This document shows, piece by piece, positions 2-43,800 of a stretch of 64,000 bases of DNA (position 1 is the stretch's first letter; every line of letters starts with the position of its first letter). This DNA comes from Phaeosaccion multiseriatum (lineage: Eukaryota; Protista; Ochrophyta, other classes): assembly GCA_965112735.1 (NCBI GenBank), contig OZ218952.1:2852001-2916000 (forward strand), read 5' to 3'. A program made the position numbers and the translations under genes. The notes under the pieces were generated by a model. The model did no database searches and was not told where the DNA came from. It saw only the letters and a list, made by a program, of their open reading frames with translations.

Positions 2-139
2 CGCGGCAAGCTGACGTGTAGCAACGAGCTGTTCGTACGCAACACCGGCTCTGCGATGGGGAACATTACGTTTGATGCCATGGTGGTGGAGGAAGGGGCC
101 TTGGTGGAGGGCCAGTTTGCATATAGTGGCAGCGAGTAG
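2..139 (+). CDS. 3' end of a bactofilin (polymer-forming cytoskeletal, DUF583) domain gene; 5' part lies outside the window
   Basis: Frame from base 2 reads RGKLTCSNELFVRNTGSAMGNITFDAMVVEEGALVEGQFAYSGSE*, matching the C-terminal windings of the bactofilin beta-helix (G.l.a...l.i..tG.v.G.I....l.ve.GA.v.G). Not in the ORF track. Confidence 0.8.
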   Translation, partial: RGKLTCSNELFVRNTGSAMGNITFDAMVVEEGALVEGQFAYSGSE

Positions 140-819
140 TAGTAAGGCAGCAAGGCAGAGCAAGCAGGCAGGCAGGATAGAAGCAGTGAGAGACAACACA
201 TGTACAGCACACCGGTTACCCCGCCTGCAATTGATTAATAAAATTGAAGCGGGGGTTGTTTTCTCTGGTTCTGTGCCGTAGCCCCCTCCTGCCTTCGGGC
301 TGAGCTTATGGTTAGGCCAGCGCTGGCTTCTCAACTTTCACCCTTCTGGCTTCTCTCTTTCCCACTGGTGACTGGCTTCTGCTGGTCGCAGTCCAGCCCC
401 TGGCTTCTCGGCTTTCGGCGGCCAGGCCAGGAGACCTGTGGCCCCCGATAAGAGAACAGAGAACCCTGGCGATCGGCCCTGGACAAGGTTATCTGATTAT
501 TAGCGCACACTGTAGGGTTGATGGTGGGGGCCGACGGCAACCGCACTCGGGAGGGCTTCCGAGCTGCGGTTGTGTCGTGCCCCCTGGGGAAGCCCTTTTG
601 TTGCCGGCCTTGAATACGGCCTTATCATCAAGGAAATCAAATCCCAGAGAGAAGGCTCCAGAGAATGCATTGAACGGTGTTTGTCCATTGCTTGTGCCCC
701 TTGTTGGTGTGGTTAGACCGGGCGGGACGCAAAGTGCAAAAAGGTTCCCCGGGCCATGGGGTGCGCCCTGCTCAGGAGCCTCCTCTTGACGGACGTGCTC
801 TTCATGTGGCGTCTCGAAC

Positions 820-2516
820 ATGCATGAGGGGCTTCCCAGCGTTGAGGAGGACGAGGCTGCTCCTTCTTCGTCGCAACAGCAGCAGCAGCAGCAGGGGGGG
901 GAGGTGAGGGGGGAGGAGAAGGGGACGCGACGAACGGAACCCGGGCTGAGCACAACCTCGCCAGCGTCGCCAGAGTCCGCCGCTGGAGGGCAGGAAGGTG
1001 GCAATATCATGGCCAAGGCGTCCGGCACACAGGGTGTGAAGCCAAGACCATCAGGAGGGGCGCTCCCGAGCAAAGTCATTACGGTGGGACCAGAGGAGTT
1101 GATGACAGACCTTAATGTGGGCGAGATTTTAGAGGACGGTGACACGCTCTTTGTGGTGCAGGGCAAGGTGCGGCAGTCCGTGGTAAAGACCAAGGTAGTG
1201 CATGTGTTTGGGACCTTTGAGGGAAAGATCGAGGCAGACTCAGTCGAGGTACGTTGAGTTTGTGAGTGAGTGAGGGAGGGAGTGGTATGCTGTTTGCTTG
1301 CATGGGAGTGGGGGCGGTGCTGTTATCAGGCGAGGGAGAGGGATGCGCGAGTGGGAGGGTGTGGTCAGGGCGAAGGGCATGTGAGTGGAGCTGATAACAC
1401 ATAGGGAAGCCTCGCTGGTATCATTGGTCATGCAATGAGAATGCTGAGTTGCAAGTTAAAGGCCAAGCACTACAGAAAACGTCGACACCGCTCACACTCC
1501 AAGGACGCTACCCCACAGGTCTTCGACGGGGGGCTTTTAGTAGGCACAGTGGAGGTACGAACCGCAGTGCTGTCGGGCCAATCCCGGGGAGCGCTCCTTG
1601 TCTCTGAAAGGCTTTTGGTGACCAGCACAGGCAAGGGCAATGGCTGTATACGATATGGAACCTTGGGGGTGGAGCGGGGCGGAAGGTTGACCGGGGATCT
1701 CAGGAGAGCTATCCCGAACTCTCCCTCCACTGTAGTCATGACAGAAGAAGAGAAAGACAAGGCAGCAGCGGCGGTCGCCAACGATGGAGTAGGAGGCCAG
1801 GGAGGGGGGGCGGCAGCAGCAATCAGGAGGAGGGAAGGGCGGAGGGGAGGAGGCAGCAGACTTGCGGCAGCGGCAGCGGCAGCGGCAGAAGGAAATGGAC
1901 GTTGACGACGCCGTGCCTCCGAGACGGTCCAAGGGAAACTTGGTGCTACAACTGGCAAAGATGGATCTCATGAGGGGGGAAGGGGGAGGGGCGGATTACC
2001 AACAGGCGAGGGGGGGGGCTAGGGATGGTCGTGATGGTGGGGGGGGCGGCGGTGGAGGTGCGGCCGGAGCGCCGATGAGAGGCAGTGGTATCCCCAAATC
2101 CACTCCTCAAGACACCAAGAACCCCAAATTAGCATCGAGTGGGCGGCGGGGGGCACCTCCGATAGCCCTCGACACGACCGCCAAGGCAGTTCCTAGTGCA
2201 GAGAGTGGTGGTGGTGGTGGTGGTGGTGGTGGTGGTGGTGGTGGTGGTGGTGGTGGGATGCCCCCGCCCCTTCAACCACAAGGCTCTCACCCCAACCGTC
2301 CGCAACCCCTTCAGTACTTCAGTGGCACCCTGCAGCACGAGATGGACTGTAACGTGGTCAGCCCCCTCTCGGACGTGCCAATGTTTATGATGACGCCGTC
2401 CTCGAGGCAGGCCAAGAGAGACATCTTTGCAGGCGGCTTTGACCTGGCCAGCTACACTGTTGAACGTGAAGGTATGTATGCTTACGGTTATGCATGTATG
2501 TATGTATGTATGTATG

Positions 2517-2547
<31 letters not shown>

Positions 2548-4532
2548 GTATGTATGTATGTATGCATGTGTGTGTATGTATGCATGTATGCATGTGTGTA
2601 TGTATGTATGTATGTATGTGTGTATGTATGTATGTATGTGGGCATGTATGTATATTTGCATAGATAAAGTATGTATGTGTCTATGTATGCATGTATGCGT
2701 GCATTTATGTGTGTATGTGTGTATGTTGACTTTGGACTGAATGTACTGTAGTAGCGGTGAAGAGGGTCAGGGTGAGGGCGCCTCTTCTTTGGAATGTTCG
2801 CTACTCAGCTTGGCAGAACATCCGAGAGGCAGCGCTCCACACAGATCGGATGCGAATGGACGGGGCCTGAGGGCATGCGTCTTGGTTTGCTATCTGGCGA
2901 GAGCTGTGGGATTGACTCTCTGCCGTTTCTCGACGCTGTCTGCCGTGCATTCTGCTCCCTCCCTCCTTCCTTCCCTCTCTCTTTTCTACGTGACACCAAA
3001 ATGCCCATTCTGCAGCGGAAATGGAGGCGACTGCGCGCATGGCTGCAGAGGAGACGCGACAGCGCTTTGTCGAAGCAGAACTTATTCGCCTCAGAGAGAG
3101 GGTAAGTGAGCCATTCATTTGTTTGCAAGCACACGACGGCCGTTTAGGTTTTGATCAAATGAAGAGTCGGTCCTCTTACTTCTCCTTCTAGTTTTTTGCC
3201 TACCTCTCATCACCCCTCTTGTTTGTTTGTTTGTTTGTTTGTTTGTTTGTTGTTTTTCACACCCCAGTCGCTTCGACGAGCGGAACGGGAGAGACAGGAA
3301 AACGAAGTCAGGCGACGGCATCAGCAGGGGCGCACACACGGCGGAGGAGGAGGACTAGGGGGAGAGGGGAGGAAGGACGGACGGGAGCGAAGAAGAGAAA
3401 CTGAAGCTCAGCGGAAGCTGCGCAAAGAGCAGGAGATTGTCATGAAAGTTCGAGCAGAGCAAGAGGAGAAGCAGCGGCGAGATCGGCGTAAGAGGAAGGA
3501 GGAGGAAGCGCGGTTGCGGCGACTAGTGGATGAGAAGGGAGGGGTGAGAGACGGGGCAGTAGCACAGCAGGAGAGAGAGTGGCGGCGCGAGCAGGAGAAG
3601 GCGCACTTTGCGAGTCAGAGACTTTCACACGCACAGCATGAGCAGCACCAGCAGGGGAGGAGCAACAGTGAAAGCTTACGGAGAGCTGCAGCGGCAGCAG
3701 CGGGAGACTATTCAGGGGGTTACCATGAGAAAGGGGAGGCTGCCCCTCCGCCGCCAAGAGGTGGAGGGAGGGGGGAGGGGGAGAGGAGAATGTCTTCGGG
3801 TGCAGTATCGTCGGATAGGGGGCCGGGCCATTTGAAGGGAGATGGTGGGGCGGCCCTGCCTCCTCCTCCACCCGAGGCCCAAGGCGAGAAAGTTGTGGCG
3901 AGAAGGGGCAGCAGTAGCGGTGGTAAACGACCTCCACTAGCCACCAACACCACCACATTACCAGAGCAAGCAGCAGCGGCGGTGACAGCGGCAGCAGCAG
4001 GAGGAAGAGGAGCAAGTAGACGGAGGGGGCAGCAGCACGTAGAAAAGGTGGGAGCCTCCGCGGCGGCAGGAGGAGCAGCAGCAGGGGCAGTAGCAGGCGG
4101 AGGAGGAGAAGGGGCAGCAGCAGCAGCGGCAGCAGCGGCAGCAGCAACGGGGGGTGCCCCCCCCACCTCCCTTGACAAGGAAGACTACTGGGCCAAGTGA
4201 GTGGACGTTTCAATTTCAGTTTCAGTTTCAGTTATTGAAGCATTTGATGACTTACTGAGTTGAGACCTCACATCTCCCCTTCTGCCCCTTTCCTTCCCAT
4301 CAAACTCAAATCTCAAAGCACATGGGCCTCCTCCTTGGACTTCTCTCGTTCTCCCTGTCTCCCTTTCTCCCTCTTTCTCTCTCCACCTCTCTCACGCTCA
4401 CTGTCCCTCTCACGCTCACTCTCTCTCCCCTCTCACCCTCTCCCTTGCCTGGTGTGTGTAACTTCGTCTCTCTCCAGATACGGAGTGGTGGACAGCGCAG
4501 CTCTGGAGGATGACGCCTCCATCCCTTTATGA
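820..4532 (+). CDS. Bactofilin-domain protein with long low-complexity/coiled-coil C-terminal extension; exons ~820-1248, 1519-2471, 3016-3101, 3268-4196, 4478-4532; apparent frameshift near the G-run at 1804-1810
   Basis: Spliced domain VHVFGTFEGKIEADSVE|VFDGGLLVGTVEVRTAVLSGQSRGALLVSERLLVTSTGKGNGCIRYGTLGVERGGRLTGDL is a bactofilin beta-helix. GT-AG junctions join in phase. As assembled the first frame stops at 1905 and the +1 frame continues to the donor after 2471. Confidence 0.75.
2472..2725 (+). repeat. (GTAT)n microsatellite starting at the intron donor
   Basis: gtatgtatg... runs directly from the GT donor at 2472. Confidence 0.95.
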
Positions 4533-8438: not shown

Positions 8439-23712
<15,274 letters not shown>

Positions 23713-24724: not shown

Positions 24725-25421
24725 TCAGTTGTTCAAGCCGAACACGGCGGCCATCAGTCCGTTGACCCTGCTGCAAAGGCCTTGCACACGTCCCAGGAGA
24801 CATCTTGCCCCACTCGCACCCCCACCCCCACCACCCCCACCACCACCAGCAGCAGCAGCAGCAAGAGCAGCAGCAGCCGCCGCCGCCGCAGCGCTACGGT
24901 CGGCAGCCTTCCTCTCACTCGGAGTACCCTTCCTCACCAACTTGACCCTGCCCCTCGACAGGCTCCTGGTAGCAGCATTGGCCAACACATCCCCCAGATA
25001 CACCCTGTCCCCCTTCGTCTTGCGTACCGTTGCCTCCGCCCACGCCCCTGGCACATGCTTGCCGGCACACCACATCTCCACCAAGTCCCCTGGCTCCACC
25101 ATCTCCTTCTCCAGCGAGCGGGCGCGTGCTTCGTTGCCCCAGCGCAGGCGACGGCGGGGAACACTCTCATCCCAGCGAGTATCCCAACCCGGATACCGAA
25201 CCTTGTACATGGCACTCCCCGGGGGGGTGCGTGTGCGGGAGCCGATCCCACTACTGCTGCTGCCGGGGACCACCGAAGAACCACTGCCTCTCGCACCTCC
25301 CCTCCTACCAGCGGTGGCAGTACCTGCAGAAATAGCGGTCTGTGTCACCTTGGCAGCTTGCCCCTCGGCCTGAACTTGCCCTGCTGCCTCAGCCCTTGCC
25401 GAAATAGCACTCGCCACGTAC

Positions 25422-25470
<49 letters not shown>

Positions 25471-27034
25471 GGTCCGGCACCTCCACCACCTCCGCGATCC
25501 ACCACGCCAGCCCGCTGTAAATGTCCATGGCCTCGAGTCTGAACTTGCCTCTCCAAGCGACTTCCACTCTGTCCCCCACCTGTGGCCTCTCCAGCCGCTG
25601 CTTGAAAGTCTGCTTCATGGAGGGGGGAGGGGCGGAAGCCTTGGCAAGGGCCCGAGCCTCCGCGGCGGCGAGGGACGACGAGTAGGCGGCTTGATAGGCG
25701 GCGGAGTACACACGCTGCCTGGCGATGATCAAGGAGGAGGAGGAGGAGGAGGAGGAGGAGGAGGAGGAGGAGGAGGAGGAGGAGGAGGAGGAGGAGGAGG
25801 AGGAGGAGGAGGAGGAGGAGGAGGAGGAGGAGGAGGAGGAGGTTGCACCGGTGGCCAATGCCTTCTCCTGCACGCTCGCCCTGCTTGCCGCCCTGCTTGC
25901 CCTCTCCTGCTCCTTCTCGGGGCCATTGCCAGGGTGGTCGGTCATTGCCGTCGTACCGTCGTTGCTCTTGCTGTTGCTGTCGTTGATGTCGGGTGCCCAG
26001 TGCATGGCGACGGGGCACAGCGAGTCCGTAGGAGGTGTATCGGGCAGCCTGGCTACCGCATCGTCCGCCGCAGCTGCAGCGACAGCCGCGGCCTTCACCC
26101 TCCACCTTGCGGCAGCTCTCATCTCCCTCCCTAAAGTCGCCGCCGCGGTGGCCTCTGCATCATGCCTGGCGGGCGGGGGCAAGGGAAAGCGCTGCTCAAA
26201 GGGCTCGCGCCACACACCGTCGCCAGAGGTAACGTGTTGGTCCCAAGCCTTGCTCACGGTGGGGAGATGCACGTGTGTGTAGAGCGGCAGAAAGGACAGG
26301 CAGTACTGCAGGAGCACCAGTGGGAGGTCGTCCAAACAGGCGAGGGGCGGCGGCTTGGTGGTGGAGGTGGTGGCAGTGGTGCCGTGAAGAGTCGCGAAGG
26401 GACCTCTCGATGCTGGTGCTGTATCACCACCACCTGCTGCTGCTGCTGCTACTGCTGCTGCTGCCACCGTGGCGCTGGCTTTATGATCGTTGTGCCTTGC
26501 CGCCGCTGCTGCGGCGGCCGCCGCCGCGCACCGCACTGCGTGCGCTCTGTAGGCTGTTGCAACCTTGGACTTTGAGGGGCGCATGCTGCTTCTTGTTCGC
26601 CTCTTCTTGCCCTCCGTCCCCGCCCCAGTCGGAGGAAAGGACCCAGCGCTGTCGCCAGCCAGGGGCGCGGGAGACGCTGGAAAAGGGTAGAGCGCTTCGC
26701 TGAAGTCGCCCCCCGGTCCGGCTACTGACGCTGCAAGAGAGGGGGTGGCCGGAGGAGGACAAGTAGAAGCACCACCGCCTACAGATACCACGCCCATCGC
26801 TGCAGTAGCGGCAGTGGCGGTAGAAACAGAGGCGCTGCTCATGTAACACTGCTGCCGCCCACCTTGGTCCCAACCACAGAGCTCTTGGTCGTCCTCGCTG
26901 TCGTCGTCGGCCATGGTTGCTGCGGTGCTCATGCTGTGCCTGTGTGCGGTCTTGACTAGCACTTCTTCCTCCTCGTCCAGCAGCAGGGGCGACCAGGGAT
27001 CCACTCCACCATCGCGAATGGCCCCTCCCATCAT
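24725..27034 (-). CDS. Intronless F-box protein with C-terminal tandem Tudor/Agenet-like domains
   Basis: F-box LDDLPLVLLQYCLSFLPLYTHVHLPTVSKAW...VWREPFEQRFP. Tudor-like PQVGDRVEVAW...WWIAEVVEV...YKVRYPGWDTRWDESVPRRRLR and VEPGDLVEMW...AWAEATV. Single long ORF; first ATG at 27034. Confidence 0.8.
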
Positions 27035-27858
27035 CTTCGAGCGAGGTCGGTCGGAGACTGGCGGAAGACCCCAAAGAAGGAACGGGGGAGACACATGGAT
27101 GAGAAACACCACAGCGGATAAGCGAAATAGAACGAACCAACTAAAAAGAGGGGTGGGGCCTTCCCCCTTCTAACAAGCGTTGGCTCCTTCTTCTGCCTCA
27201 ATCACAAAGCCTTTCTTGCGTTGCCTTAGGTCACCTTGGGCTGGGCCCCTTTCTGTCAGAATAGGGGCTCCACTCACCTCGAGCGGAAGGACACGGCGTG
27301 GGAGGGGGGGGTTCCACTCTCCTAATCTTCTGCTGCTGCTGTTGCTGCTATGCTGGTTCTGCTCTGATGCTCGACGAGCAGCACGAGTGGTTTCAAAGTT
27401 TTGATTCAAGGAGGCAAAAAACAAAAAAAAAAAAGGAAAACGACTGCGCCAGCCGTGAGCACAAGATTGGACCACCAACACGTGAAGCGCGTAGAGGTCG
27501 AGCGCCGAGACGCCCCCCCCCGTTTTCTACATGCATGGCCCCCAGAATTTCTAAGAACCATCCTTAACCTAAGCTGGCTGCCCTCGAAGGGAGAGGAGAG
27601 ACGGGGGGGCAAGCGAGGGGTGAAGAGTGGGTGGGAGGTCAGAGAGAGGTGGGGACGAGCGGTCTTCTCCCGATGCTTCGGTCCACCCATGGGTGGATAG
27701 CTGGGTTTTTCATTGGAGCGACGTCTTGTGCCGGAAAGGGGGGCTGCTGGCGAGAAGCTCTCACTCGGGGCTGCGTTCGGTCCCTCCCACGAGGTCCCAA
27801 TCTGTGTTACATCCACTCTTGTCTTGGTCCTTACGTTCAAGCACTTTCTTCCACAGCG

Positions 27859-31001: not shown

Positions 31002-34000
31002 TTACACCCGGGGGGGCTTACTCGGTCGCAAATGCTCCTCAAACGTGCCCGTACCCTCGAGCACAACTTCAAAGCACTCCCCCTTCTCCACGTGGAAGCG
31101 GAAACGACTTCGATACAGCACCGCCTCCTTGGGGCGAAACGTCACAACAATCGGCCGAGGCAGGCGCCACCCTTCCTTCGACTCGCCCTGACGCCGCAAG
31201 GAGCCCTCCAAAGTGAGTTCGGGTTTGGCCCACGACAGCTCGGTCTGGTGGTGAGTGTCCCCTCTCCACACAGGGGCCGGACTGCGGTTCTTGTCGCTGG
31301 GTAGGCGGGCAGCGGAAGAGGAGAGTGGCAAGGAGGGACCTCGCATCACCCCACCGAGCTCGCTGAAGCTCCATACGCTATCGTCATCCACGACCACAGG
31401 CGGCGACCGGACGGACCCGTCGGCATTCTTCCTCCCCGCCCCCTCCTGCGCGCCCCTCCTTGCCGAGCGATCAAGCAGCTCCTGCGTCATTGGTACGTGA
31501 AGCAACGTCCAATGCGCATCCACTTCCGTCGGGTTGGCAATGTAGATGGACGCCTCACCCTTGTCCTCGGAATGCACAAAGCCAAAGTCATATCTCGCCG
31601 GACTGACGCTGACCATGGGCCGCAGCAGCACCCCGCGCAGGCGAATGCGCTGCTCGTGACCGGTTCGAAACGCCACTCGAAGCTGCCCGACACCCTCTTC
31701 CTTGAGCCGGAGGAGAGAGTCTTGTTGCGACTGCCCCATGCTGTGCTCCGCGGTGAGGGTGGAGCTTAGACTCTTGGTGTACTCGCCGCCCAGCGGTAGA
31801 AAGGCAATGTCCACAGTCACATTGTGCCCGGGCAGCAGCGAAAACACCTCCTGCTCCTCGGAGGAGGAGGACGATGACGACGATGATACTGCAGGAGTTG
31901 GTGATCCAAATCCAACACCCTCTGCCCCCCCCCCTGGACCTACTCCGGAGGCCGCTTGGTCAAAGGACGTAGCAGCGGCGGCGGCGGGGACTGGCGGCGT
32001 CGTGGCAGAGGAGGAACAAGACGCTGGTCTTCGTCTCCGACCGGCCCTAGACCGACTCAACGGGTCCGATTGACCCCCTCCTGGACGCTTCGTGCGTAAG
32101 ACCGCGAAGGGCCCGTCCTCGATGTGCAGAGAGAAGACCATCGGGATGGTGTAGTTGTTGCGTAGGGTCACTTGCTTCACCATCGAGCGATGGAAGCTTC
32201 GGCGAAGTCGCTCTTGAAAGGACATTGTCGTCGTTGTCATCGTTGGTGTCGAGGATGTGGATGGCTGGGGGTGCTGCTGCCTCTGCTGTCTGCTGCTGCT
32301 ACTCCCTCCCTGCTGCCTACCTGATGCCACCGAATCACCAACTGCTGTTGCTTTCAGCGATCGCTTCCACGCCGGACTCTGGAGCGTGGCCAGCAGCAAG
32401 GGCGGCCCGCTGAGCCCCAACAGCTCCGGGGGGGTGTGCAGATGCGCATAACTCAGAGCAAAAGCATCATTCACGCCACCAGTGCTCGTGGGCGCCGTAC
32501 CCGAGCCGCCCTTGCCCTCAGCGCTGCCGTCCCCATTTACGTCCAACTGGTGCTGATTCTGGTCCTGCTGCTGTATCACCAACTGCTGCTGCGGCTGCTC
32601 CTGCTGCTGCTCTTGGTGGAGCGGCGGTGGTGCGTGAATGGACCAGAGGGTGAACTTTAGTGTCTGTGAGCCCCCCGGGTGGATTCGCTTGTCCACAGCC
32701 AGACAGGGCTCAATACCCTTGGCGGACAGGAGCAGTCGGAGGGCCCCTTTGATGTCCTTGACCGGCGCACGCTGCTGCTGCTGCTGCTGCTGCTGCTCCT
32801 TCTGCTGCTGTATCACCAACTGCTGCGGCTTTATTTGCTGAGATTGCGACCTTGTCTTCTGTGGCTGTTGTTCATCACCAGTACTGTTGCTGTCTCGTCC
32901 GGCTCCATCCCCCCCTCCCCCTGCTACTCCTCCCCCTCCTCCGCCTCCTTCTGCTGCTGCGGCTCCTCCTCCTCCTCCTTCCCCTGCTCCTCCTTCTCCT
33001 CCTCCTCCTTCTCCTCCTTCTTCTCCTCCTCCTCCTCCTCCTCCTCCTCCTCCTCCTCCTCCTCCTCCTCCTTCTCCTTCTCCTTCTCCTTCTCCTTCTC
33101 CTTCTCCTCCTCCTTCCTCTTCTCCTCCTCCTCCTGCTCCTCCTCCTCCTCCTCCTCCTCCTCCTCCCCCTTCCCCACTACCTCCTCCTCCTCCTCCTCC
33201 TCCTCCTCCTCCTCTCCCCCTTAGCAATCCACTCCCTTCTCTTTCCAACCCCACTGCCATCCCTTCCCCTGCTGCCTGTCCGCCCTCTTCTGCAACAGCA
33301 CCCCCTCCTCCTCCTACCACCGCTGCAGCCATCCCACTGCCCGACGCCCGCTTCACAAAGTGCGCATCCGCCTCACAGTATGCCTCCATCGCTCCCTCAT
33401 GATGCACGGGCAGCGTAATCTTATACACCGCCTCCGAGCGAGGAGGGATGGTACTTGTCGTCGGCTCAATGACAAACGGGGACTCAAAGTTGTCAGTCTC
33501 GTGATAGCATAGACCCACGTCCACTGCGCCACGCGGTCCCACGCGTACGCTGACGTCGACAAGGGGGGGCACATGGCCGCTGTCTTCCGCAGGGTCCTGG
33601 CACAAAGGGATGTGGGTAAGTCAATGGGTGGGTGGTTTACGATGCGTCAAAGGTGGGTGGACAGAGCATGGATGGATGCATAGGTGGGTGGACAGAGCAT
33701 GGAAAGAGGAGAAGGAGGGGTAGTAATGGAGTTGAAAAGTCTTCAGATTCTTTCAGTTTTCAGTTTTCAGTTGATGTGACCCCCTTGAACTAGAAGTGGG
33801 ATCGACCCCAAAACTTCCACAGGTACTTGATCGATCTCGAAGCTTCTGTGGGTGAAGCACCTTACCTTCATGTTCCACGTGATGACAGCAGGAAGAGTGC
33901 CCGCGTTCTTGATTCGCACCACTCGAGTCGTGTGACCGCCATTCACAAAGACCTGTTGGTGATACAGGGAGGGGGTGGTTGGCGAGCTTGCAACACACAC

Positions 34001-34839
34001 GCCGCAAATACACGCACACGCATCTCACACGCACACATACAAACGTATGCACACGCATGCACACACGCACACACACACACACACTCTCTCACACACACAC
34101 CGACACACACACACACACGCGCGCACGCACGCACGCACGCCCGCACGCACACACATCCTCACCTCTCCAAAGCTGAGCTTGGGCTCCGGACCACCCAAGA
34201 TCATTCCCAGCGCCTCCTTCTTGAGCGCCAAAGGACACCCATCCACTGCCATTGACACGGAGAGAGAGGCAGGGGGCGGGCCTCCGTCCACCAGCACCTG
34301 TTGGGGGATACATAGTACAGAGTTTGAGTTTGGTGTGGATACATAGTAAGGAGTTTGAGTTTGGTGTGAATACATAGTAAGGAGTTTGAGAAAGAGCTAG
34401 AGATTGAGTTTGATACATAGTACAGAGTTTGAGTTTGGTGTGGAATGATGGTCAAGAGTTTGAGTTTGGTGTGGAATGATGGTCAAGAGTTTGAGTTTGG
34501 TGTGGAATGATGGTCAAGAGTGTGAGTTTGGTGTGGAATGATGATCAAGAGTTTGAGTAGTAGGAGAGATGCTTTCGCTTTAGGGGGCTTATTGATACCT
34601 CTCCCTGTCCTTCTACCCTTGTATCTACATACACAACATTACGGAAGTCTCAGATTGGGCTTATTCTACCCCTTTATCTCACACACAACATTACGTAAGT
34701 CTCAGATTGGGCTTATTCTACCCCTTTATCTACACACACAACATTACGTAAGTCTCGGAGTGATGCCCGTAAGCTAATACTTCGAAGTACTACGTACCCC
34801 TTCAGCAGCAAGCAGCAGCATCTCTCCTTCGAACACACA

Positions 34840-34902
<63 letters not shown>

Positions 34903-36438
34903 CACTTACACACCTTGCTCTGAAGCTCGTCCAGGTAGCGGCCAGGGGTGTCGTTGAAGCCTTGAAGTTGAACTTCCACCACTCCCCAGGGGGGGATGGT
35001 GCCTGTGGGACGGGGGGGGGGATGGGTGGGGCAGAGGTGGGCGTTCGGGTGGAGCGGAAGGGCGAGGGAGGGCGGGTTGGGGTGAGGAGGGAGGGGGGTG
35101 GGGGGTGGGGGATGGCTTACCTCTCTCTCGCTCTCCCTGTCCCTCTCTCTCTTCCCCCCTCTTTCTTCCTCCCCCCCCCTCCCTCTCTTCCCCCCTCTTT
35201 CTTCCTCCCCTCCCCTCCCTCCCTTCCTCACTTACCTCTGTCGGGCGTGACGATGAAGGCCGCCCCCCTCCCGTCTTTGAGAGCAAACATGTCCTCTCTA
35301 GCGTGGATCTGCTCCATTGTGCGCTGCTGACCCTGCTTGCTCTGGAACACACCATGCGCCTGTGTGCGTGTTGGTGGTACATAGGGAGGGAGGGAGGGAG
35401 GGAGGGAGGGAGGGAGGGAGGGAGGGAGGGAGGGAGGGAGGGAGGGAGGGAGGGAGGGAGGTGTTTGTGTGTGGGGGGGGGTAGATATGTGTGTATGTGG
35501 ACGGGCGTGCGTGGGTGCGTGGGTGCGTCTGTGTGTATGTGTCTCCACCCCCCCTCTTTCTCCTTACCTCATGCATATTGTCCAGCAACCTCTTGCTGCT
35601 CTTGGTAAGGGTACTGTCGCTGCTGCCATTTGTAAGCGAGTCGTGATGGTGCTGGTGGCTCTGCCTGCTCTTGGCAGAGTGGGCTGTGGTCATCGTCCCC
35701 CGCCGCTCCTCCTCGCCGCTGCCGTTGTTGCTGTTGCTGTTGCTGTTGCCGTTCATCGGCTCCGGGTGGTCGGGGGTGTCTCTGAACTGCGCTATGATGT
35801 GATCGTTTCGAAGCACCTTGGGGGGGGTTCAGAGCAGAACAGCAGCGCCGTTAATTGGGGGTATTTGCATGCACACACACACAAACACACACACACACAA
35901 ACATACACACACACACAAACACGATGTCTCCACCCACCTCCTGGAAGTGTTCTTCGCTCATGGGCGTGGCAATGAGCCGCTTTGGTGCCTTGTAGCCCTT
36001 CAACGTGGCCATGTTGAGTGTAAAGGGGGCTGACACAGCCGACAGATTGCGGATGCACATGCGGAGGGAACGTCGCTCGAGCAGCTGAGGGCGGGGGAGG
36101 GAGGGAGGGAGGGAGGGAGGGAGGGAGGGAGGGAGGGAGGGAGGGAGGGAGGGAGGGAGGGAGGGAGGGAGGGAGGGAGGGAGGGAGGGAGGGAGGGAGG
36201 GAGGGAGGGAGGGAGGGAGGGAGGGAGGGAGGGAGGGAGGGAGGGAGGGAGGGAGGGAGGGAAGGAAGGAGTGAAGGAAGGGAGGAGAGAGGTAGGGGGG
36301 GAGGGAGGGAGGAAATCGCAAGGTGGGGGATGATTACACGTCAGATTCATATGTATTGATATCCAGAGCCTCGGGGCCTCTGCAGAGGCGGATACACGCA
36401 CACGCATGCACACACACGCACACACACGCACACGCACG

Positions 36439-36469
<31 letters not shown>

Positions 36470-37786
36470 ACACAAACACACACACACGCACGCACACACA
36501 CACAAACACACCTGCACCTCGCCGAACTGGAGCTGGGGCAGCGGCGCCTTCTCGGGGAGGGCGTCTTTCCTCTCCCACTGCACACAATGCGGCGGCTGTA
36601 GGGCAGTGGGTGTCTCTTCCCCTTGAGCAAGGACCGTGTAGCTCAGGACCACGTTCTTGTTCTGGGCAGTGAGACTGAAGCCGACCGGGACAGGCATACC
36701 AAAGGCTCTGAGGAAGGAGAGAGGGGAGGAGGGAGGGGAGGGAGGGAGGGAGGGAAAGAGGCGGAGGGAGGGAGGGAGGGAGGGAGGGAGGGAGGGAGGG
36801 AGGGAGGGAGGGAGGGAGGGAGGGAGGGAGGGAGGGAGGGAGGGAGGGGTGAAGTGGGGTGGATTGGATTGAAATGAGATGGTGTGGAAAGCATGTGGAA
36901 TGGCACCGGGACTTGAACGTTAAAAGACCCTTCTTACTCTAACCAACCTTTGACCCTCCTGACACCCCTGATTGGTCCTGACACCACTCCCTGGTTTTCA
37001 GTTTCAGTTCCATTCGACCCCCAATCAATGGCTGGCCCGAAAGGGGCACTACTCCTTGGAGCGTAAGGACAGAAGCTTCGTTCGATCTTCGATATCGCTT
37101 ATCGACTCCATTTATCGCTGTTCGATACACTTGATACGGTCACATAAACCTGAAACTGACTGAAAACTAGACACGGTCCTGACACCCCTGACCCTCCATC
37201 GCACCCCACCTGCAAGCGTACACGTCATCGATATGCCCGGGTTGTTTGGCGGTGTAAGTCACCTCCACAGCACACGCCTCCTTGCCGCTCAGCTCGCCGG
37301 AGGAGGGGTTGAAGTCGATGGAGTAGGCAGAGGTGGGGCCGCCTGGATGGGATGGCAGTGGATAGATGGCAGTGGATAGATGGCAGTGGATGGATGGCAG
37401 TGGATGGATGGCAGTGGATAGATGGCAGTGGATGGATGGCAGTGGATGGATGGCAGTGGATGGATGGCAGTGGATGGATGGCAGTAGATGGATGGCAGTG
37501 GATGGATGGCAGTAGATGGATGGCAGTAGATGGATGGCAGTGGATGGATGGATGGATGGATGGATGGGATGTCAGTGGATGGATGGCAGTGGATGGGACG
37601 GGATGGCAGTGGATGGGATGTCAGTGGATGCATGGCAGTGGATGGGACGGCAGTGGATGGATGGCAGTGGATGGGATGGGATGAGATGGGATGGGAGTCG
37701 ATGGGACGGGGATGGCAGTGGGTGGGGCGGGGGAGGGGATCGGAGGTGATGAGGTTGAGGGGGGGGGCAGGGGACAGAAACAGACA

Positions 37787-37820
<34 letters not shown>

Positions 37821-40800
37821 TACATAGAGATGAACAGAGAGGGAAGGAGAGAGGTAGAGAGATAACGGAAGAGAAAGCCCCACCGCTACCGCTCATCCAT
37901 TGACATAAGTCACCCACACACCCATTGACATAAGTCACCCACACCACACACAACACCCATTCACTGACGACAGCCACACCCACCTGGCCTCTCCCACTTA
38001 AACCTCGTGGCAAGGTTGCTCAAGTTGGTGATGACCACCTCCCTCTTAACCGGTACCCCGACATAGCTCACCCCGAGCTCCACACTGCTCGTGCTGAGAT
38101 AGACCTTGGGCGCCTGCACCTCGCCTCGCACACTCGTAAACTCGCTACCGAACGACAGGCCCAAGGCATCGCTGGACCGACTTGCTACCTCAATATGGCC
38201 CCTGACTCTCTGAGACAACCTCCCTGCGTCACACGTTATTCGAACTTGGAGGGAAGAGTTGGGCGCGAGCTCGGCGTGGGGAGGGTCGAAATGTAACTGT
38301 GCCTCCGCTCCCTCGATGAAGAACGAGTCTGTGCTCACGGTGCTCACCAGAGATGTTCGTCTGCTGCCACCTCCTCCTCCCCCCCCCCCTCCTCCACCTC
38401 TGCCGTCCTTCCCTCCTCCTTCTCCTCCTCCTCCTCCTCCTCCTCTTCCTCCTCCTTCGTCTGTCCCGGCCTCTCCTCCGTCTTCCTTCTTGTTGTGGCT
38501 GATGTCCTTGCCGAGCGCCAAAAACGCAAAAGGATTACTCTCTTCGGAGGCCTCTGACACCTCTCTCAACACACACATCGCTGCCACATCACAAGTGTTG
38601 TGCAGCGTCATTTGCTTCTCCACCTTGCCCCCCACAGCAATTAGTCCGAGGTCAATCTCAGCACAGCTGAGGCGTATCCTCGGAGGGATGCACTGCAAGC
38701 AGACCATCAACACGTTCTCCTCCCCACTATCTCCTCTAGCCGCGGGTACAGCAGTGGGGGCGAGAAGCGGCAGACCCACACACACGGGACCGAGTTGAAA
38801 CGATGTAACCGTCACTTGACACACCAACTCTTCCCCGGGCCGCAAAACACCCTCCTTGGGGCTCACTTCGATCACCACAGCGGGTTGCTGCCGCTGTTCC
38901 ACCAACCGCTGCCCCTGCCCCTGCCCGGGCTGCCCTCCTCGAGCGAAAGAGCTTCCGTGGTCTCCTCGATCATCCTCTCCAGCCTCTGTGTCCGTGGCCG
39001 CTGTCGTTCTTCTCTCGAAGAATTCGCAATCGTCCCAGTCTCCCATCAGTGCTTCTCCTCCCCCTCCCCCCCCTCCTCCTCCTCCTCCTCCTCCTCCTCC
39101 TCCTCTCCCGCCCCCCCTTCCTCGCCCTCCTCCTCCTCCTCCTCCTCCTCCTCCTCCTCCTCCTCCACCCTCTCCTCCTATACCCCACATGCTGAGCACC
39201 GCCCCACCTCCACCTCCCCACCGTCTCCCCCCCCTCGACGCAGGCGCGGGATCGAATCCTAGCACATCCACCCCGCCGTCTCCATACGTCTGAAGCGCCT
39301 CGGCCGCGAAACGGTATGGGGCGGGGCCCTTCAAACTCGTATTCCTCAACACCACCGTCGATGAATACGGCATCCCGTACAACAGCTTGCCAGGCACCTG
39401 CAACAACGGCGGGTCCATTTCAAGACAAACCGCCTCCGCCGCCCCCCTCACCAGCACCTTGAGGTAAGGAAAGTCCCGGAGCGTGGGTGCGAGCAAATCT
39501 TCCATAAGCTGCCCGGACAACTTCCTCTCAATGATGGCTCGGAAAGCCGGCGGAAGGAGACAGGCGAGGTCCTTTAGAGGAACCATCACCTTCCCCCCCT
39601 CCTCCTCCTCCTCCTCCTCCTCCTCCTCCACTGCCTCCTTCCCTGTTGTCCTGGCCTTCTTCTTTGTCAGTAAGAGTTTGCGCTGGTGTGCTTCCGCATA
39701 TGCCTCAAGTGCGCTCAGGCCCTTCAAGAGTTGGGCCATCTCTTCCTCTTGTTCCTCTTCCTCGTACTCTCTTTCCTGCCTCCTCTGCTGCTCCTGTTGT
39801 TGTTGTGCTTCTTCTTCTTCTCGCCTCTTGTGATGTACCGCAACCCCCCGCTCAGCCTGCGTCTCCGGCTCATCGATCATCTCTTCCTGTTGCTGCTGTA
39901 CCACCAACTGTTGCTGCTGCTCGCTTCCCTCGCCATCCCCCTCCTCCGCCACCGCCACCGCCACGGCTTCCGCTGCTGCTGCACGCTGCTGCTGCTCCCT
40001 CCGACATGCCTTTACGCACCCCTTCACTGCCCTCACCAGTGTATCCAGTGCGTACACTCCCTTCCCTCTGGGGTCGGCTTGACGGACCAAGCACTCGAAT
40101 CGACTCATCATTTGCTGCTGCCCCCCCCCCTTCTTCCCCAGAGTAACGGCGCCGTTGTCGCCTTTCACCATTCCCTCCGGTGGCGGCGGCTCTTCTCCTC
40201 CTCCTCCTCCTCCTCCTGCGCCCTCCTCCCCTCCCTCCTGCCCCTCCCCCTCCCCCTCCCTTCCCCCTTCCTCCTCTCCCTCCCCCTCCCCTGCCACTGT
40301 CAGCAGCCGCCCGCAAGGAAGTACCTCCTTCATCGCCGCAAGAGGGGCACGCTCGAGGACAGCCACCAGATGGCACTGGACAGGCTCCACCCCGACAGGA
40401 GCAAAGGTTACCGTGAAAGTCGTCTCCGCCAGGGATGGCAACACACAACTCGAGGGCGAGATGGCAAAGGGGCAGCTGCTGCTGTTGCTGCTGCCAATGT
40501 TGTTGCCATTGCTGCCCCCACCATCGCCCCCGCCTTCTGCTCTCGCCTCAGCCTCTGCTTCCACTGCCCTCCCCCCCCCCTTCTCTTCAATAGGCATCAC
40601 AGCTCGGCCACTTGCACGGCCCGATCCACCCGCCCCCTCCCCCTCCTGCCGCAGCAGTGGTTGCACCTCCCATCGGAAGGGCAGGTCTAGCATCGTGTGG
40701 TTCGTCAGCGCAATGGTTTGGGTCCCCACCCCCCCCAAGTCGACCACAGGGAAGTACAAATCCTCCACCGGAGCCACGGGCACTGGCACAGGCAGCGGCT

Positions 40801-40823
40801 GTGCGGGCGGAGAAGCACCACCC

Positions 40824-40858
<35 letters not shown>

Positions 40859-43800
40859 TGGTGATACAGCAGCAGAAGGAGGAGGGATTGGAGGAGGCGC
40901 AGGCAGACCCAAGGCGTCGGCCTGTGCTCGCTTCACAGCCGCTTCCTCCGCTGCGACCTCTGCTTCTGCCGCCGCCGCCGCCGCCGCGTCTGCTCGACTG
41001 TGCCCATTGACGGCAGAGACGCTCAGTACGGCTTGCTCACAGTCTCCTCTGAGCTCCAGCCAGCGCACCTCACAGTTGTCCTGCAGTAGCACCACCTTGC
41101 GCGTTGCTGGGCCCGCTTGGGTGGGGAGGAACTCTACGCGAAGCATTGCAGTCTCTCCTCGGTCCAGGGCAAAGTCCGTGGGTTGGAGAGTAAAGGGGGC
41201 GAGTTTGAGTCGGGGAAGAAGCGCCTGTGCTGTGCGCGGCTCCGGGTAGTCCTCCTCCTGATGCATGTTGGAAGTTACGTGTGTATGTATGTATGTGTGT
41301 GTGTGTAGTAAGTCAGTGAAAGAGTTTGTTCGTGAGCTTCGCTGGGGAAGGATAGCATGTCGGTGCAAAATTCCGTGCCATCGACTTCGTTCTCTCCTTC
41401 CTTCCGAGAAAGAGAGCAAGGAGGGAGGAGCAAACAAGAAGGCTTGGCTGGGTGGCCTAGTTGGGTGGCCTACTTGGGTGGTCTAATTGGGTGGCCTAGT
41501 CGGGTGGCCTAGTTGGGTGGCTTGGCTGGGTGGTCTGGTTGGGTGGGTCTAGTTGGGTGGTCTGATTTCGGGTGCGGGCCTAACCTGTAGGAAGCGGAAT
41601 CGCACGGGACCTCCGGCGTTGGAGATGATAATGTCCGTTGTCTTTGCCTCGCCAAGCAGACAAGCGCCGCAGTCAAGCACTCCATCAGAGGGGAGGTCGA
41701 GCAGGGGGCGCTCCCGGTGGGCCCAGATGAAGACCGGGAAGGAGCCTGCTTCGGTTACGACGGTTACAACGTCTTCGTAGTCACCCACTCCGTCGGGGTG
41801 GAAGTCGATGAGGACGGTGGCAGACATGCCTGTCAGGGAGGGAGGGAGGGAGGGAGGGAAGGAAGGAGGAAGGGAGGGAGGGAGGGAAAGGGGGAGGAAG
41901 GGAGGGAGGGAGGGAGGGAGGGAGGGAGGGAGGGAGGGAGGGAGGGAGGGAGGGAGGGAGGGAGGGAGGGAGGGAGGGAGGGAGGGAGGGAGGGAGGGAG
42001 GGAGGGGAGGGAGGGAGGGAGGGGAGGGAGGGAGGGAGGGAGGGAGGGAGGGAGGGGAGGGACGTATATGGGGAGCAAGCGAGAGGGATAGAGGGGAGGA
42101 AGGGGGAGTGAGCGCTTGTGAATGTTGAAGGAAGGGGGGAAAGCACCTTCTGTGGGAAGCAGTTACGCCGGCGGTTACGCAGGCGGTTCCGCAGGCGGTT
42201 CCGCAGACAGAGACCGACGCACACTACGCCCGCAGCCCCGCACGTGCTCTCTTCGACTCGACACCTGAAGACGTAATGGCTATTGTCTGCCCGTCTATCT
42301 CTCTGTCTGTCTGTCTGTCTGTCTGTTGGTCCGTCTTCCTGTCTGTCTGCCTTCCTCCCTCCTTCCCTCCCTTCCTCCCCGCCTCCTTCTCTCCCTCTCT
42401 TCCCCCTACTTCCGCACAAACCTGGAGCTAGCCGTCCTCTCTTCCTCTCTTCCTCATCTGTCTCCTTCGGCAGCGGAAACCGCGTCCCCCCCTGCCCCCC
42501 CGCCACCTCCAGCCCAGGAGCAGCCTTATCCGCCGGAAAAGAGATACTCCTGAGAGAGAAGAACTCTGTGCGAGGAGGGTGCACGCGAAGGGTCCTAACC
42601 AACGCACTAATGTTGCACAAGCGAAGAGAGGCCGTGTAACCCCCTCCTGCTTCAAAGTGCAGGTACTCGACCATGGGTGGCTCGGCGAGGAAGTAGCCGT
42701 GTTCGCCTTCCACCTGATGTCAGGAGGAGGGAGGAGGAGGAGGAGGAGGAGGAGGAGGAGGAGGAGGAGGAGGAGGAGGAGGAGGAGGAGGAGGAGGAGG
42801 AGGAGGAGGAGGAGGAGGAGGAGGAGGAGGAGGAGGAGGAGGAGGAGGAGGAGGAGGAGGAGGAGGAGGAGGAGGAGGAGGAGGAGGAGGAGGAGGAGGA
42901 GGAGGAGGAGGAGGAGGAGGAGGAGGAGGAGGAGGAGGAGGAGGAGGAGGAGGAGGAGGAGGAGGAGGAGGAGGAGGAGGAGGAGGAGGAGGAGGAGGAG
43001 GAGGAGGAGGAGGAGGAGGAGGAGGAGGAGGAGGAGGAGGAGGAGGAGGAGGAGGAGGAGGAGGAGGAGGAGGAGGAGGAGGAGGAGGAGGAGGAGGAGG
43101 AGGAGGAGGAGGAGGAGGAGGAGGAGGAGGAGGAGGAGGAGGAGGAGGAGCAGTAGTACCGGGGGTCAAGTACGTAGAGGTGGAAGGGATATGACGTGAG
43201 GCAGTGAGGGGAAGTGAGAGCAGCAGTACCGAGTGTCAGGTAGTAGGGCGTGAGGGAGGGGAGGATGAGGAGGCGGGAAAGTGGCCCGTACCACTCTCTT
43301 TCCTTGTACCCAAGCACCCTTACCCTTACTCTTACGTAAGTGCCCTTCCCCTCACCTGGCCTTGCGGGGCGATGGTGCCAATCGCCTTGTCCACGCTGAG
43401 TGGATGGAGGTGTTGCTCCTCAGTCAAGAGCTTGCTATGCCACCTGACGGGAGGGAAGAGAGAATAGAGGGGTTGGGGGAGGGGGTTGAAGGCGGGAGGG
43501 ATTAGGAGGCGTAGGTGCGGGGGTCAGGATGAGACGGATGAGGGTGGGGCAAGCAGGAGGGGAGGGGCACGGGGATCAATGTGTGTGCGGAGTTGGACAA
43601 TGCCGTGTGGGAGATATTCATTTCCTTGGGATGGATTGCGTACATCCTCCGTCCCTCCCTCCGTCCGTCCCCCCCTCCCTCCCTCCCTTCCTCCTGCCTG
43701 CCTGCCTCCCTCCCTGCCTCCCTGCCTCCCTCCCTCCCTCCCTCCCTCCCTCCCTCTCCCCCTCTTCTCCCTCCCTCCCACCCTCCTAACCCTCACCTAG

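Follow-up and report, generated by a model that had tools for sequence, protein, structure and literature searches.

Two neighbouring bactofilin genes, one of them with a predicted intron inside the domain, in the ochrophyte Phaeosaccion multiseriatum

The bactofilin locus

The DNA considered here is a window of 64,000 nucleotides (nt) from the ochrophyte Phaeosaccion multiseriatum (assembly GCA_965112735.1, contig OZ218952.1, positions 2,852,001 to 2,916,000 of the forward strand), and all coordinates given below count from the first letter of this window. Its beginning carries two bactofilin domains (Pfam PF04519, also DUF583), both on the + strand; the genes to which they belong are termed A and B, and they are real eukaryotic bactofilin genes. 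Taken as a whole, the best explanation of the first 1.9 kb, and one that is considered likely, is that they hold two separate nuclear genes of the same orientation (+), each coding for a bactofilin-domain protein and each a eukaryotic descendant of a bacterial bactofilin. An earlier note on this DNA, made from the letters alone, had placed two same-strand bactofilin domains about 1 kb apart; this is borne out by Pfam and profile matches for both genes and by a structural model for gene B, and the distance from the domain end of gene A to the domain start of gene B is ~950 bp. No further bactofilin-like segment was found in the six frames of the 64-kb window. The features of the two genes are the following:

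2..136, +: last 45 codons of gene A, with the C-terminal windings of the bactofilin domain, in frame 2; the remainder of the gene precedes the window
137..145, +: three consecutive in-frame stop codons, TAG TAG TAA, closing gene A, as read from the sequence
237..242, +: AATAAA, located 98 nt beyond the stop of gene A and a candidate for its polyadenylation signal
820..1248, +: exon 1 of gene B, an open reading frame (ORF) of 143 codons counted from its first ATG; a further ATG stands at 1009
1249..1518, +: predicted intron of gene B, 270 nt, GT-AG, phase 0 at both ends, GAG/GTACGT...CCCCACAG/G (slashes mark the exon borders)
1519..1710, +: domain part of exon 2 of gene B, the C-terminal windings of the beta-helix, from the PF04519 match and the structure model
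1711..1905, +: Ala/Gly-rich tail of exon 2 of gene B, ~65 residues, with the stop codon TGA at 1903-1905, from the translation

Gene A

As for gene A, its 45 residues matched PF04519 with an E-value of 1.7e-5 and 25.4 bits, over profile positions 59-97 of 98; this score is just under the gathering score of the family (27.9) because the window edge cuts the domain. A custom hidden Markov model (HMM), built from 132 bacterial matches, recognized the same fragment with 31.8 bits and an E-value of 2e-11 at HMM positions 129-167. In the alignment with the bacterial relatives, gene A retains nine invariant columns and deviates at their 'IRYG' and 'GG' motifs. The protein has almost no C-terminal tail after the domain, and the AATAAA at 237 is the sole one on the + strand in the first 9 kb.

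Gene B: domain, intron and predicted fold

Gene B was searched, aligned and folded exon by exon. Exon 2 alone matched PF04519 with an E-value of 3.1e-8 and 34.2 bits, to be compared with the gathering score of 27.9, over profile positions 40-97; among its nearest Atlas clusters, 29 of 30 are bactofilins. Exon 1 starts with ~84 acidic, disordered low-complexity residues, followed from position 1072 by the N-terminal half of the bactofilin beta-helix, which would measure ~120 residues over the two exons. Its last 57 residues (1078-1248) matched PF04519 weakly, with an E-value of 0.04; 18 bacterial bactofilins align colinearly, through the N-terminal half of their domain, with the tail of this exon (1072-1248), at 28-44% identity and with seven invariant columns, and the match to the custom HMM, also colinear, falls at its positions 37-120. 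Gene B keeps all seven of these columns, together with all 12 invariant columns of the C-terminal-half alignment, namely G5, G9, A16, G20, G24, L32, G38, G42, Y46, G54, G55, and G59.

Regarding the predicted intron, it has stops in all three frames and a guanine plus cytosine (GC) content of 0.55, against 0.61 in the exons, and the coding sequences on its two sides are homologous to adjoining parts of the bacterial domain. The pattern GTNNGT...CAG is common to all four introns predicted in this region, with donors at 1249, 2472, 3102, and 4197. A different acceptor for gene B, near 1567, was considered and rejected, as it is out of frame. The earlier note had spoken of two spliced genes: for gene B the intron is visible, whereas of gene A only the last 136 coding bases lie inside the window, so that the description stands for the former only.

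The C-terminal half of the protein from gene B is predicted to have the right-handed triangular beta-helix fold of the bactofilins. AlphaFold2, run on the 64 residues of exon 2 with an alignment of 18 rows, returned an all-beta coil with a predicted local distance difference test (pLDDT) score of 94.3. When this model was compared with known structures by VIA-align, the best matches were the bactofilin entries 6RIB (Z 9.3), 6RIA (Z 9.3), and 2N3D (Z 8.8), with a root-mean-square deviation (rmsd) of 1.2-1.4 Å over 62-63 of the 64 residues, and the next match had a Z of 5.7. Foldseek against the PDB placed the Thermus thermophilus bactofilin TtBac first, weakly (E 0.3), and TtBac was also the sole PDB match by sequence. 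The residue that corresponds to TtBac F105, located at the polymerization interface, is Leu in gene B (1687-1689) and Val in gene A; in the nearest bacterial relatives it is Ile, Val, or Leu.

Three features set the protein from gene B apart from its bacterial relatives. One concerns the length of the beta-helix: one and the same bacterial winding is matched twice, by the last part of exon 1 (GTFEGKIEADSVE) and by the first part of exon 2 (GGLLVGTVEVRTAVL), and, because of this, the protein most likely has one extra winding of ~15-18 residues. An in-frame alternative donor exists at 1195 (AAG/GTAGTG), with which gene B would be nearly colinear with the bacterial proteins and the extra winding would be removed; its being the true donor is a minor possibility, against which stands the lack of the GTNNGT pattern found in the four predicted introns. 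A second feature concerns the N-terminus, which reads MHEGLPSV from the ATG at 820, or MAKASGTQ from the ATG at 1009; in both cases the bacterial membrane-targeting peptide of the MF..K type is absent. In BacA, the membrane-targeting sequence is MFSKQAKS, where M1, K4, and K7 are critical (PMC12448750), and among the bacterial relatives 57 of 132 start with MF and have a Lys or Arg within the first eight residues. The third is the 'SGxFxG' winding, in which the Phe of the relatives is replaced by Ser. Finally, the Ala/Gly-rich tail of gene B had no family match.

Relatives of the two genes

An exhaustive phmmer search with exon 2 of gene B retrieved 725 proteins with E-values of 1e-3 or less. 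Among the real matches, the best have 43-53% identity and 150-280 residues; where named, they are annotated as CcmA/bactofilin or as polymer-forming cytoskeletal protein (from an alphaproteobacterial metagenome-assembled genome, MAG), and two of them lie on densely packed contigs of bacterial type. When each prokaryotic species was represented by one genome, a scan gave 79 loci with 42-58% identity to exon 2, nearly all from Alphaproteobacteria (Geminicoccaceae, Rhodospirillales, Parvibaculaceae, and Kiloniellales among them), a list of taxa that is biased, given that the search pattern was drawn from the same subfamily. No relatives of exon 2 were found in the JGI metagenome contigs; viral contigs were scanned as well, because a bactofilin has been reported in giant viruses of the Imitevirales (2025; PMC12192438), and no relatives of exon 2 were found there either.

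In a tree of A, B, and the 79 alphaproteobacterial loci, computed on 64 columns, the end branches of B and A measured 3.4 and 10 changes per site, respectively, and neither placement was supported. For this reason the claim is limited to similarity: by sequence, bacterial and mostly alphaproteobacterial bactofilins appear as the nearest relatives of gene B, and no donor lineage is claimed.

As for the relation between the two genes, A and B share 33-36% identity over 39 comparable residues, in line with the view of the earlier note that the two domains are highly diverged. On the 39 columns shared with the bacterial set, the identities are as follows, with the qualification that this set was picked by similarity to B and may lack the closest relatives of A:

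B versus bacterial set: median 49%, maximum 59%
bacterial set, pair to pair: median 54%
A versus bacterial set: median 31%, maximum 41%

In these comparisons, gene B behaves as a divergent member of the bacterial subfamily and gene A as an outlier. Because A and B are 33% identical, while the medians to the bacterial proteins are 31% for A and 49% for B, the two genes are neighbours, but not a recent tandem duplicate pair of the BacA/BacB kind.

Weighing of the alternatives

Several observations weigh against two separate and functional bactofilin genes. The tail of exon 1, folded alone by AlphaFold2, reached a pLDDT of only 55.8, and the conserved Phe in the 'SGxFxG' winding of the relatives is a Ser in gene B. 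No eukaryotic orthologue of gene B was present among the search results; the phmmer search with exon 2 had no match below 1e-10 and no self match, hence the product of gene B is absent from the collection of 15 billion proteins. Finally, the stop of gene B (1903-1905) is overlapped by a coding region in frame 2 whose ATG is at 1892, and because of this overlap the 3' end of gene B is uncertain. The coding region in question, termed gene C, is an orphan and has the following putative structure, based on consensus splice sites and reading frames:

1892-2471, 3016-3101, 3268-4196, and 4478-4532, +: the four predicted exons of gene C

The protein from gene C would be of low complexity and highly charged, with Gly-, Arg/Glu-, and Ala-rich parts; its exon 1 contains a (GGT)n run of ~17 units that is read as poly-Gly (2206-2256, +), and most of its first intron is taken up by a (TGTA)n/(TGTG)n microsatellite of considerable length (2472-2740, +). 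Gene C had no Pfam match, no sequence relatives, and no Atlas match. Three word-index protein searches, made with exon 2 of gene B, exon 3 of gene C, and the conserved end of exon 1 of gene C, were all blank, in agreement with the absence of B and C from the protein collection.

The overlap raises the possibility, tentative but not to be neglected, that B and C are one gene. Its product would have ~800 residues, with the bactofilin domain as N-terminal module, followed by a long tail that is charged, of low complexity, and probably helical. In that case, and with the same tentativeness, the stop at 1903 would be only apparent, owing to a sequence error of one base or to a genuine frameshift close to the seven consecutive G at 1803-1809: the ATG of gene C lies 11 nt upstream of the stop of B, frame 2 is open from 1793, and the removal of one base in the G run carries frame 1 into frame 2. 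The GC content by codon position in 1790-1891 fits frame 2 slightly better than frame 1, but this periodicity signal is weak and falls within GCN/CAG trinucleotide repeats. Similarly, no AATAAA occurs between the stop of B and the end of C, yet the motif is also absent after gene C, which makes it an unreliable marker here. The spacing of the genes favours the fusion too, as gene A and gene B are separated by 680 bp, whereas the spacer between B and C is negative. On the other hand, gene B has a clean stop in the sequence as given, no homologue with the fused B-C architecture was found, and no plausible short intron joins the two frames, since the donors within 1519-1905 lack the GTNNGT pattern.

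A further alternative, considered improbable, is that gene B, or both genes, are decaying relics of an old bacterial gene transfer, no longer expressed or able to polymerize. The long branch of B in the tree (3.4 changes per site) would fit with this, as would the change of the conserved Phe into Ser, the winding that is extra or duplicated where the exons meet, and the lack of orthologues and of the protein itself in the collection searched. A relic is difficult to reconcile, however, with two exons of gene B that are both open and in the correct phase, with intact splice signals, with the retention of every invariant column in both halves of the domain, and with the very confident model of exon 2; moreover, the GC content at third codon positions is 0.63-0.68 in the domain, compared with a total GC content of 0.55 in the intron. 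As for bacterial contamination, an assembly chimera, or a chance beta-rich repeat, these explanations are effectively refuted. That the nearest relatives are all bacterial speaks for contamination, but the domain is split by a predicted 270-nt GT-AG intron with stops in all frames, the identity to any bacterium is at most 58%, GC content and repeats are those of the rest of the 64-kb window, and the flanking genes have introns; a chance repeat is countered by HMM E-values and structural Z scores far beyond chance. The canonical spliceosomal (GT-AG) intron inside the domain, together with the intron-bearing eukaryotic neighbours, is the reason why gene B is taken as nuclear and not as a contaminant, and the earlier note was right in regarding the second gene as genuinely eukaryotic. 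Two separate nuclear bactofilin genes thus remain the preferred reading.

Genomic setting

The window is GC-rich (0.52-0.63) and rich in microsatellites, and the genes near the bactofilin pair are multi-exon. On the - strand, the region 31005-42719 is a large gene for a flagellar/ciliary protein, ~30 kb from the pair; Ig-like domains of the CFAP65, DLEC1, and HYDIN/ASH type (E down to 6e-12) were recognized in open segments of 872, 1173, and 312 codons. This CFAP65/DLEC1-type gene shows that the organism has a flagellate stage. An open segment of 814 codons at 24728-27169 (-) has an F-box domain with 21.3 bits (cut-off 20.5), plus a chromodomain-like match below threshold. Finally, the stretch 9600-12000 contains dense (CA)n/(TG)n microsatellites and repeats of the GGGA/GGAA type, which give rise to long spurious ORFs in several frames on both strands.

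Comparison with known bactofilins

PF04519 proteins of stramenopiles and ascomycetes were reported by Deng et al. in 2019 (bioRxiv 10.1101/617639), a work with which the background given in the earlier note agrees, namely that bactofilins are mainly bacterial and that their stramenopile homologues have no known function. PiBac from Phytophthora infestans (PITG_07992, UniProt D0N980) forms filaments in vitro, and its mRNA is up before and during spore formation; the expression of an Ectocarpus bactofilin was attempted and failed, horizontal transfer was proposed, and a single eukaryotic ancestor for these bactofilins was not implied by the tree (bioRxiv 10.1101/617639). A 2024 study found that eukaryotic bactofilins fall within the canonical bacterial ones. 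By description, the genes presented here are like PiBac and the putative bactofilins known from stramenopiles, Ectocarpus D7G0L1 for example, in being nuclear-encoded stramenopile PF04519 proteins that presumably derive from bacterial gene transfer. They differ in that bioRxiv 10.1101/617639 makes no mention of introns and describes no tandem pair, no intron within the domain, no extra winding such as the one that is probable here, and no similarity of alphaproteobacterial type.

Among the bacterial proteins, the CcmA-type bactofilins of Alphaproteobacteria (MAGs of Geminicoccaceae, Rhodospirillales, and Parvibaculaceae, for example MFQ5974074.1) are the best matches to both halves of the domain of gene B (identity 42-58% to exon 2, 28-44% to exon 1); they have the same glycine pattern and the same disordered tail on each side of the domain. 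In contrast to B, they have no intron and most likely one winding fewer, and many have the MF..K/R peptide that B lacks. Caulobacter crescentus BacA and BacB are a pair of bactofilin paralogues in one genome, as A and B are here. Residues 74-137 of BacA (2N3D), which form its C-terminal half, fit onto exon 2 of gene B with a Z of 8.8 and an rmsd of 1.2 Å; BacA binds membranes via its MFSKQAKS peptide, absent in B, and recruits a cell-wall synthase (PMC12448750). TtBac (6RIA, 6RIB) is the top structural match to exon 2, with a Z of 9.3 at ~20-24% identity. Bactofilins polymerize independently of nucleotide by means of their terminal windings, where TtBac F105 and BacA F130 represent a conserved hydrophobic interface residue, and the equivalent Leu in B, or Val in A, is hydrophobic but not Phe.

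Proposed function and meaning

By analogy with PiBac and the bacterial proteins, each product would form non-polar filaments, in which the beta-helices are stacked on one another at their ends and for which no nucleotide is needed, and these filaments may serve as a static scaffold in the cytoplasm. Since the membrane peptide is absent from B, its product would depend for its position on partner proteins or on its own tails, and not on direct binding to lipids. The ideas of the earlier note that A and B could co-polymerize, in the manner of BacA/BacB, and could have a role specific to the zoospore stage are conjectural and find no support in the sequence.

A bolder proposal, which must be regarded as rather unlikely, is that the locus is part of a composite, eukaryote-specific bactofilin cytoskeleton drawn from several anciently diverged or independently acquired lineages, with the alphaproteobacterial-type B beside the very different A. 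In such a system B would have been remodelled, through the extra winding, the loss of the membrane peptide, and a possible fusion to gene C, and protein partners, instead of lipid, would anchor the filaments, for instance in the flagellate stage.

In conclusion, the pair adds members to a family reported in stramenopiles in 2019 and leaves existing knowledge unchanged. In the literature searched, no functional study of bactofilins was found for any eukaryote, algae included. Bactofilins are among the few polymers of the cytoskeleton that eukaryotes appear to have acquired from bacteria, and a photosynthetic stramenopile with a tandem pair of them provides concrete constructs with which algal polymerization, the mixing of paralogues, and positioning without a lipid anchor may be addressed.

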